Origin: Macrostomum lignano
Lineage: Eukaryota
Assembly (NCBI GenBank): GCA_002269645.1
Contig: NIVC01000928.1
Span: forward strand, 186,001 to 250,000
Reading direction: 5' to 3'
Length of the DNA: 64,000 nt
A program made the translations under genes and the position numbers. This document shows positions 6,601 to 6,717 of this stretch, piece by piece. The notes beneath the pieces are model-generated. The model was not told the DNA's origin, did no database searches, and was given only the letters and a program-made list of their open reading frames with translations. Within the stretch, counting starts at the first letter, position 1. Each line of letters starts with the position of its first letter.

Positions 6601-6717
6601 TTTGACCGCCTGTACCTGAGCCACTCGGCCTGGTGCAACTGCAGCATGCTGTACAACCCCATCAGGGTGCACTGCGAGCGCTGCGTCAAGGTCAAGGAGA
6701 TGCACAGGTGCCGGTGA
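614..6717 (+). CDS. Divergent Wnt-family ligand, 5 exons: 614-795, ~2475-2836, 4322-4716, 5600-5831, 6350-6717
   Basis: Exon 1 ends in a hydrophobic signal-like stretch. Wnt motifs: [72 protein letters not shown] sites give matching phases 1,0,1 for introns 2-4. The exon 2 acceptor and exon 1 are less certain, and the subfamily cannot be assigned by eye. Confidence 0.92.
896..2424. repeat. ~21-bp purine-rich minisatellite (GAGTGAGATAGAATGAGATGG-like) filling Wnt intron 1
   Basis: Direct reading. Explains ORFs 1954-2490 and 2042-2440. Confidence 0.95.
2870..3460. repeat. ~30-bp purine-rich tandem repeat in Wnt intron 2
   Basis: GAGGTAGAGGGGAGAGTGAGAGGGAGGTTT-like units. Confidence 0.9.
3930..4280. 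repeat. (TCTG)n microsatellite in Wnt intron 2
   Basis: Direct reading. Confidence 0.97.
4730..5475. repeat. Two adjacent arrays in Wnt intron 3: (CCGATCCTGATC)-like 6/12-mers, then (CCATCAAGATC)-like 11/12-mers
   Basis: Direct reading; the unit switches near 5100-5130. Confidence 0.92.
5850..6333. repeat. (TCAA)n microsatellite filling Wnt intron 4
   Basis: Direct reading. Confidence 0.96.

Follow-up and report, generated by a model that had tools for sequence, protein, structure and literature searches.

Does a Wnt ligand need the Trp and the two vicinal Cys (WCC) at the tip of its index finger, the C-terminal hairpin 3? In XWnt8, the tandem disulfide Cys320-Cys321 and Trp319 of this tip occupy a pocket of the FZD8 CRD, and the isolated Wnt finger domain displays CRD-dependent binding affinity (PMC6040091, a review citing Janda 2012). 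According to a 2026 study, the WCC motif also binds a hydrophobic cavity in the luminal domain of WLS, and Wnt3a W333A, Wnt5a W361A, and hairpin-1 Trp mutants, although still lipidated, no longer reach the surface or undergo carrier-mediated secretion (PMC13434646). Translation of positions 6631-6687 (plus strand) of the 64-kb stretch of Macrostomum lignano DNA analyzed here, hereafter the window, yields a C-terminal Wnt hairpin without WCC. This raises the question whether the locus encodes a genuine Wnt, and if so whether its finger is a dead site, a product of decay or misassembly, or a rebuilt contact surface.

A five-exon Wnt gene and its surroundings

Six-frame reading combined with splice-site inspection delineates a Wnt gene of five exons, in which all introns are of the GT-AG type and which encodes a 493-aa product. 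The five-exon translation is an exact match to a M. lignano protein in GenBank (P0182 = PAA74702.1, BOX15_Mlig003032g1). The features of the gene are as follows.

614..795 (+): exon 1, with the start codon and an N-terminal hydrophobic segment (putative signal peptide); donor GT at 796-797
2532..2836 (+): exon 2, with the N-terminal helices, a poly-Gly run at 2692-2718 and the RWNC motif at 2797-2808; splice sites AG/GT
4322..4716 (+): exon 3, with the saposin-like core and, at 4558-4599, a remodelled hairpin 1 in place of [W/F]xWGGCSDN
5600..5831 (+): exon 4, with the lipid "thumb" hairpin 2 at 5627-5671, its acceptor Ser310 at 5645-5647, and the start of an Arg-rich linker
6350..6717 (+): exon 5, with the remainder of the Arg-rich linker, the C-terminal cystine-knot domain at 6448-6714, and the stop codon
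6634..6684 (+): loop of the index finger (hairpin 3), with Asn474-Pro475 (6655-6660) at the tip instead of vicinal Cys-Cys

The frame of exon 5 runs through ...KVKEMHRCR to a TGA at 6715-6717. As assessed against Pfam, the 493-aa product matches PF00110 (wnt) over profile positions 23-305 of 305 (E=3e-41, 142.2 bits for a cutoff of 20.3), and the last-exon peptide by itself matches profile positions 215-305 (E=7e-14). The N-terminal hydrophobic segment spans residues 37-61 and is followed by AAG/QG; the ~36 residues that precede it are unusually many for a putative signal peptide. The minus strand of 6631-6687 gave nothing comparable on translation. The initial annotation of this stretch, which was made from the letters alone, had left room for transcripts that use another last exon with WCC. 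Scans by regex and tblastn of the whole 64-kb window revealed neither such an exon nor a second Wnt gene, and both ideas were rejected on this evidence. The same annotation had raised the matter of expression, on which the exon structure is informative because it equals the model in the Mlig_3_7 GenBank annotation, whose sole source is TransDecoder ORFs from an RNA-seq transcriptome built with guidance from the genome (PMC5730564). The five-exon structure and the last exon thus have transcript support, and we infer from this description of the pipeline that the gene is transcribed, with reads that could be common to near-identical copies.

The introns and the 3' flank of the gene consist almost entirely of tandem arrays (896-2426, 2884-3449, 3929-4281, 4725-5474, 5852-6334, and 6789-7695), built of 21-bp units (x72), 33-bp units (x16), (TGTC)88, arrays of 12-48 bp, (ATCA)n, and 23-bp units (x39). 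A near-identical copy of the gene at another locus (L002) spans 4.0 kb, against 6.1 kb for the window gene, which indicates that array lengths differ between the copies. Low-complexity runs of Gly and Arg are found in the protein as well, and the poly-Gly run in its N-terminal domain (9 Gly) varies in length between the two near-identical copies, the other reading GGGGGGG. Older UniProt models of the window locus (P0002 and P0004-P0008; A0A1I8F... entries) are chimeras with frameshifts whose reading continues further downstream (~9380-9580), and part of them are named for unrelated domains (DEP, SH2, PARG), which is misleading annotation.

Further along the window there are several other open frames. 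A 942-aa frame at 9377-12205 (+), composed of Ser/Thr-rich "SSAKTV" repeats and then of other minisatellite-encoded repeats, probably represents repetitive DNA, not a gene. A single-exon 496-aa ORF at 17180-18670 (-) has a Cys-rich N terminus and an LRAT (NlpC/P60-type) domain (E=7e-12). Genes neighbouring the Wnt are represented at 26102-27458 (+) and 33527-34186 (+) by exons of a neurotransmitter-gated ion channel of the Cys-loop type (Neur_chan_memb, E=9e-34 and 1e-7) and by an exon with a FOXP coiled-coil domain (E=1e-9). Finally, a single 931-aa ORF at 42938-45733 (+) contains PPDK_N, the ATP-binding domain of pyruvate phosphate dikinase/PEP-synthase-like enzymes (E=2e-70); it is apparently intronless amid an intron-rich region, and the enzyme type is more familiar in microbes and plants.

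The finger tip and the rest of the ligand

When the window protein was compared with PDB chains using phmmer, its finger aligned to human WNT7a (CNCKFHW-CCYVKC), and on the basis of this alignment CC is replaced by Asn-Pro in a loop that is one residue longer. At the tip, Phe is replaced by Met, Trp by Tyr, and the vicinal Cys pair by Asn474-Pro475. The initial annotation had described the hairpin in these terms, i.e. no WCC tip, one extra residue in the loop, and replacement of the Phe, the Trp, and both Cys, and the translation and the phmmer and MAFFT alignments agree with it on each point. In the MAFFT alignment with 59 canonical Wnts, the window protein keeps 22 of the 24 conserved Cys columns (those with Cys in at least 83% of the 59) and loses the vicinal pair alone, with N474 and P475 there; these Wnts were picked for a canonical finger, which by itself makes the CC columns 100% conserved. 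Because the two lost Cys are the partners of a single disulfide, this amounts to the clean removal of one disulfide, without an orphan Cys. More generally, the window protein retains 41 of 57 columns with a conservation of 85% or more, among them RWNC, H-N-x-x-x-G and, around Ser310 in the lipid hairpin, G-x-S-G-x-C; the GRGY of canonical Wnts reads GWNRF. Given the PF00110 match, the intact ORF, and the 22 of 24 Cys, the earlier description of a genuine Wnt with its reading frame and other cysteines intact stands. At the base of the finger, Asn468-Cys-Ser (6637-6645) forms an N-x-S sequon (N-C-S), which is present in this type of Macrostomum Wnt (type A) and absent from a second type (type B, see below), where the residues are R-C-Q.

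How unusual such a tip is was assessed in 119 Wnt cluster representatives from outside Macrostomum with a parsable finger. CC is present in 114 of the 119, and the loop has nine residues in 112, compared with ten in the window Wnt. Within the nine-residue loops that bear CC (n=111), F or Y occupies position 2 in 109 (M in the window Wnt), position 4 holds W in 93 cases and Y in another 11 (Y in the window Wnt), and V occupies position 8 in 101, a residue that the window Wnt keeps. These counts of residues and lengths show that the consensus C-x-C-K-F-x-W-C-C-x-V-x-C given in the initial annotation is right. Its description of the tip as invariant needs tempering: the tip is near-constant, and five representatives do without CC, namely SciWntM of Sycon ciliatum (P0064), a Wnt-6-like protein of Clavelina lepadiformis (P0024), a Wnt-5-like protein of Styela clava (P0148), a protein of the ostracod Notodromas monacha (P0134), and an unnamed ENA protein (P0135), each of which is a single database model of unchecked quality. 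Because the list was retrieved with a profile made from two CC-less proteins, this 4% is unlikely to be an underestimate. All five resemble the window Wnt in that the vicinal pair is gone and the flanking finger cysteines are kept, and three have a 10-residue loop. In contrast, they come from unrelated lineages and carry unrelated replacements (e.g. TRRRFPWPVR and NFSWDVTRVV), none with the NPIRV found in Macrostomum. To judge from these sequences, loss of the tip has occurred several times, sporadically, among divergent Wnts.

AlphaFold2 (AF2) modelling from an alignment of 82 Wnt sequences gave an overall pLDDT of 77 and a pTM of 0.73. The finger is modelled as two strands (457-473 and 476-491) joined by a two-residue turn at N474-P475, with a pLDDT of ~96. 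A control with the four Macrostomum sequences alone collapsed to a pLDDT of 33 and was uninformative, and for this reason the confident hairpin indicates compatibility with the Wnt fold and is not independent evidence for it. As assessed by Foldseek, the AF2 model matches WNT7a (8TZO), XWnt8 (4F0A), and WNT3 at a TMt of 0.69-0.74 (E=4e-14 to 1e-13 for 8TZO and 4F0A), and the two-domain Wnt fold, i.e. a saposin-like N-terminal domain (NTD) and a cystine-knot C-terminal domain (CTD), is thus predicted to be retained. With canonical Wnts (XWnt8-Fz8 CRD 4F0A, WNT3 6AHY, WNT7a 8TZO, and WNT5a-WLS), the window protein shares the Pfam wnt domain, this predicted fold (TM 0.69-0.74), 22 cysteines, RWNC, a Ser-bearing hairpin 2, and a long C-terminal β-hairpin with the same flanking disulfides. 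By its fold and framework, the product of the window gene is an ordinary member of the family, and the gene is a genuine, intact flatworm Wnt. The differences are concentrated in a few places. In hairpin 3, canonical Wnts have KFxWCCxVx, whereas the Macrostomum protein has neither the vicinal disulfide nor the Trp and has one residue more. Hairpin 1, WxWGGC in canonical Wnts, is changed and contains a 5-residue insertion, the His of CxCHG is Leu, and an Arg-rich insertion separates the NTD from the CTD.

In hairpin 1 (4558-4599, exon 3), the remodelling of the canonical [W/F]xWGGCSDN affects both aromatic positions, which are E and Y. The same remodelling is seen in a paralogue, whose hairpin 1 reads QKYGGISLPSCDDN. 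Hairpin 2 (CxCHGxSGSC) still has the acceptor Ser310 within its G-x-S-G-x-C context, in line with the earlier statement that the lipid site is retained. The His of CxCHG, which is kept in 93% of the canonical Wnts examined, is replaced by Leu307 (5636-5638) in both paralogue types, and for this reason lipidation of Ser310 is not assured. Ile takes the place of the Trp of KTCW in the window protein, and, with Leu307 and this Ile, recognition by Porcupine may differ. The linker insertion between the NTD and the CTD (residues 359-387, encoded by 5792-5831 and 6350-6396) is Arg-rich, predicted to be disordered, and studded with multibasic R-x-R/K-R motifs that could serve as a proprotein-convertase site or as a heparan-sulfate-binding site. 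In the paralogue, this linker is basic as well, shorter, and without an intron.

PDB 4KRR, which we take to be Drosophila WntD, was also recovered by Foldseek. WntD reportedly has no lipid-acceptor serine (site 1) and is said to be independent of Porcupine and Wls. It would resemble the Macrostomum protein in being a lineage-specific Wnt that remains functional after dispensing with one of the two elements by which Wnts canonically contact Frizzled. The elements differ: WntD would be without site 1, whereas in the Macrostomum protein site 1 is retained and the change is at site 2.

Paralogues and relatives in Macrostomum

The M. lignano genome encodes a second type of this Wnt, type B, which is 45% identical to the window Wnt and is found at three loci (P0003 = Mlig029070g1; P0183 = Mlig033752g1/Mlig007946g1). 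Type B shares three intron positions with the window gene, one of them at exon 2 in P0003, and its finger has the same architecture: WCRCQMKSNPIRVDCQQC. Its tip, QMKSNPIRVD, is a 10-residue loop without CC, in which the Met at position 2 and NPIRV are identical to those of the window Wnt. The residues before and at the turn are S-N-P in type B and Y-N-P in the window protein. In the Mlig_3_7 assembly, the CC-less NPIRV trait occurs at five loci, the window and L001-L004.

The window copy and its type-A near-duplicate at L002 (Mlig015547g1) differ by 14 synonymous and 9 nonsynonymous nucleotides, corresponding to a dN of 0.0073, a dS of 0.042, and a dN/dS of 0.175 (NG86). All amino-acid changes map to the signal-peptide region or to the low-complexity Gly/Arg linkers, with none in the folded domains or the finger. 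As judged from these coding differences, the type-A Wnt is under purifying selection. Across the type-B copies, the last exons show at most one difference, a synonymous one, which makes their dN/dS uninformative.

No orthologue was found outside Macrostomum in an exhaustive HMMER search of 1.84 billion representatives. With a profile of the two paralogue types, only M. lignano sequences scored better than 1e-35, several of them frameshifted models of these loci derived from an older assembly, and the next match had E=9e-24. A search with the two C-terminal domains alone (nine candidates) gave no match, and a search with P0003 recovered only P0003 and P0001, with no orthologue from another species. 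Neither M. cliftonense nor M. hystrix was found in the protein libraries searched. Those of the nearest non-Macrostomum matches that were looked up bear mixed automatic names (Wnt7b-like, Wnt2, Wnt16-like, Wnt8b-like, and Wnt2b-like). Orthology to a named bilaterian Wnt family was rejected, since no affinity was apparent from HMMER scores, from the distances to other Wnts, which are flat (0.73-0.79), or from a rough neighbour-joining tree, in which the two Macrostomum types are sisters.

A July 2026 bioRxiv preprint by Gasiorowski, Tripathi, Bavafaye Haghighi, and Rink reports that Macrostomum has Wnt1, Wnt5, Wnt11, and a multi-copy, macrostomorph-specific WntM, established from M. cliftonense and M. 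hystrix and placed outside the 13 bilaterian Wnt families (10.64898/2026.07.29.741434). The clade of the window Wnt probably belongs to this WntM group. Both are multi-copy Macrostomum Wnts that group with no bilaterian Wnt family; the link goes by description rather than by sequence. The initial annotation had considered that the tip might be an already described trait of a subfamily. It is a trait of a subfamily, being present in a paralogue type that is 45% identical, but it is not described in the WntM preprint, in which the words "cysteine" and "index finger" do not occur (10.64898/2026.07.29.741434). Likewise, the literature that we searched yielded no description of the Macrostomum tip trait and no paper on the vicinal disulfide in the context of Wnt-Frizzled binding.

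Possible roles of the rebuilt tip

On balance, we lean towards the window gene encoding a functional, lineage-specific Wnt ligand in which the rebuilt tip is a working contact surface of changed specificity, both for site 2 of Frizzled-type CRDs and for the luminal cavity of WLS. The Trp and the vicinal disulfide of WCC have given way to a [Y/S]-N-P-I-R-V tip that is one residue longer, in which an Asn-Pro turn, instead of the eight-membered disulfide ring, probably closes the β-hairpin. The flanking disulfides would still staple the hairpin around this turn, and Pro at this place could stand in for the unusual geometry that the backbone adopts at a vicinal disulfide, an idea in which we have low confidence. 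Ser310 would be lipidated, the protein secreted, and its choice of partners altered. That the tip is still a working contact surface is suggested by its identity in two types whose sequences otherwise agree at only 45% of positions. Within the finger, no stretch is better conserved between the two types than the tip, which also keeps its apolar character in part (Met, Leu, Tyr, Pro, Ile, and Val). This favours a functional contact surface over a dead site, although the conservation of NPIRV between paralogues could reflect a folding constraint rather than a role in binding. An altered choice of receptor is a reasonable reading of the sequence, and beside Frizzled site 2 the binding to the docking site of WLS is probably altered. 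Because hairpin 1 is rebuilt too, altered handling by WLS is a serious possibility. The initial annotation was silent on both the docking of WCC into WLS and the remodelling of hairpin 1.

The loss of WCC might have been thought to mark relaxed constraint in a redundant polyploid duplicate, or an error of annotation or assembly. M. lignano shows hidden polyploidy, with extensive sequence duplication (PMC5730564), earlier UniProt models of the locus are frameshifted chimeras, and the protein has its runs of Gly and Arg. We regard this explanation as very improbable, since the ORF is intact across five exons with canonical splice sites in a transcript-derived gene model, the same tip is present at five loci and in two old paralogue types, and the loss takes both partners of one disulfide and leaves no unpaired Cys. 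This clean paired loss, combined with a dN/dS of 0.175 and zero amino-acid changes in the folded domains, led us to reject a pseudogene. A more substantial competitor, which we nevertheless hold to be unlikely, is a ligand with altered secretion (poor export, a very short range, or an exit independent of WLS docking), or one that binds through the lipid site only, filling the lipid groove of the CRD with no productive contact at site 2, and would then be a competitive antagonist or a partial agonist. It draws on the finding that Wnt3a and Wnt5a need the WCC tip as well as the tryptophans of hairpin 1 in order to reach the cell surface and be secreted (PMC13434646). In the window Wnt, both Trp-bearing contact hairpins are altered, hairpin 1 departing from [W/F]xWGGC and hairpin 3 being without WCC, and the lipid hairpin is retained. 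Conservation of NPIRV and of the Met at position 2 between paralogues that are 45% identical would however be unexpected for a surface that has lost its function, and the WLS and Fz of Macrostomum may have co-evolved. Purifying selection and five retained loci would fit any function and do not point to antagonism specifically. The antagonist acting through the lipid site only, which the initial annotation had put forward, is unsupported and disfavoured: NPIRV is identical in both paralogue types, which argues that the new tip still binds something.

That something might be a non-Frizzled receptor (Ror, Ryk/Derailed, PTK7, or an sFRP-like CRD), with the rebuilt tip as the specificity determinant. 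The tip is indeed conserved and yet unlike any Fz-binding Wnt tip, and flatworms have expanded repertoires of Fz and sFRP (10.64898/2026.07.29.741434). We consider this rather improbable, because the remaining Wnt surface is kept, including the lipid thumb that fits the grooves of Fz-type CRDs. We thus return to a functional ligand whose tip engages Fz-type CRDs and WLS with changed specificity as the preferred explanation. A broader reading, which we advance only tentatively and think unlikely as a whole, is that these proteins form a class of Wnts in which two of the three hairpins that grip partners (1 and 3) are rebuilt and the lipid hairpin is kept. Their export and receptor docking would then be unlike the WLS-cavity and Frizzled site-2 mode of the Wnts studied so far, and they would act via a co-evolved WLS or CRD, via a non-Frizzled receptor, or as endogenous modulators of canonical ligands.

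The window Wnt does not amount to a new kind of system, as CC has been lost sporadically in a few other divergent Wnts. The WCC tip has nevertheless been treated as a constant of Wnt biology, to which this protein is a natural, selectively maintained exception. In a tractable, regenerating flatworm, it offers a natural test of whether the tip is dispensable and of what can substitute for a vicinal disulfide in a β-hairpin. It thereby touches on two current questions, the specificity of site 2 and the part that hairpin 3 plays in WLS-dependent secretion. If the clade is WntM, as is probable, an NPIRV tip without CC would provide a molecular signature for a group hitherto defined by phylogeny only. 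The window Wnt would thereby inform how ligand-receptor and ligand-carrier specificity evolve in lineage-specific expansions of the Wnt family.
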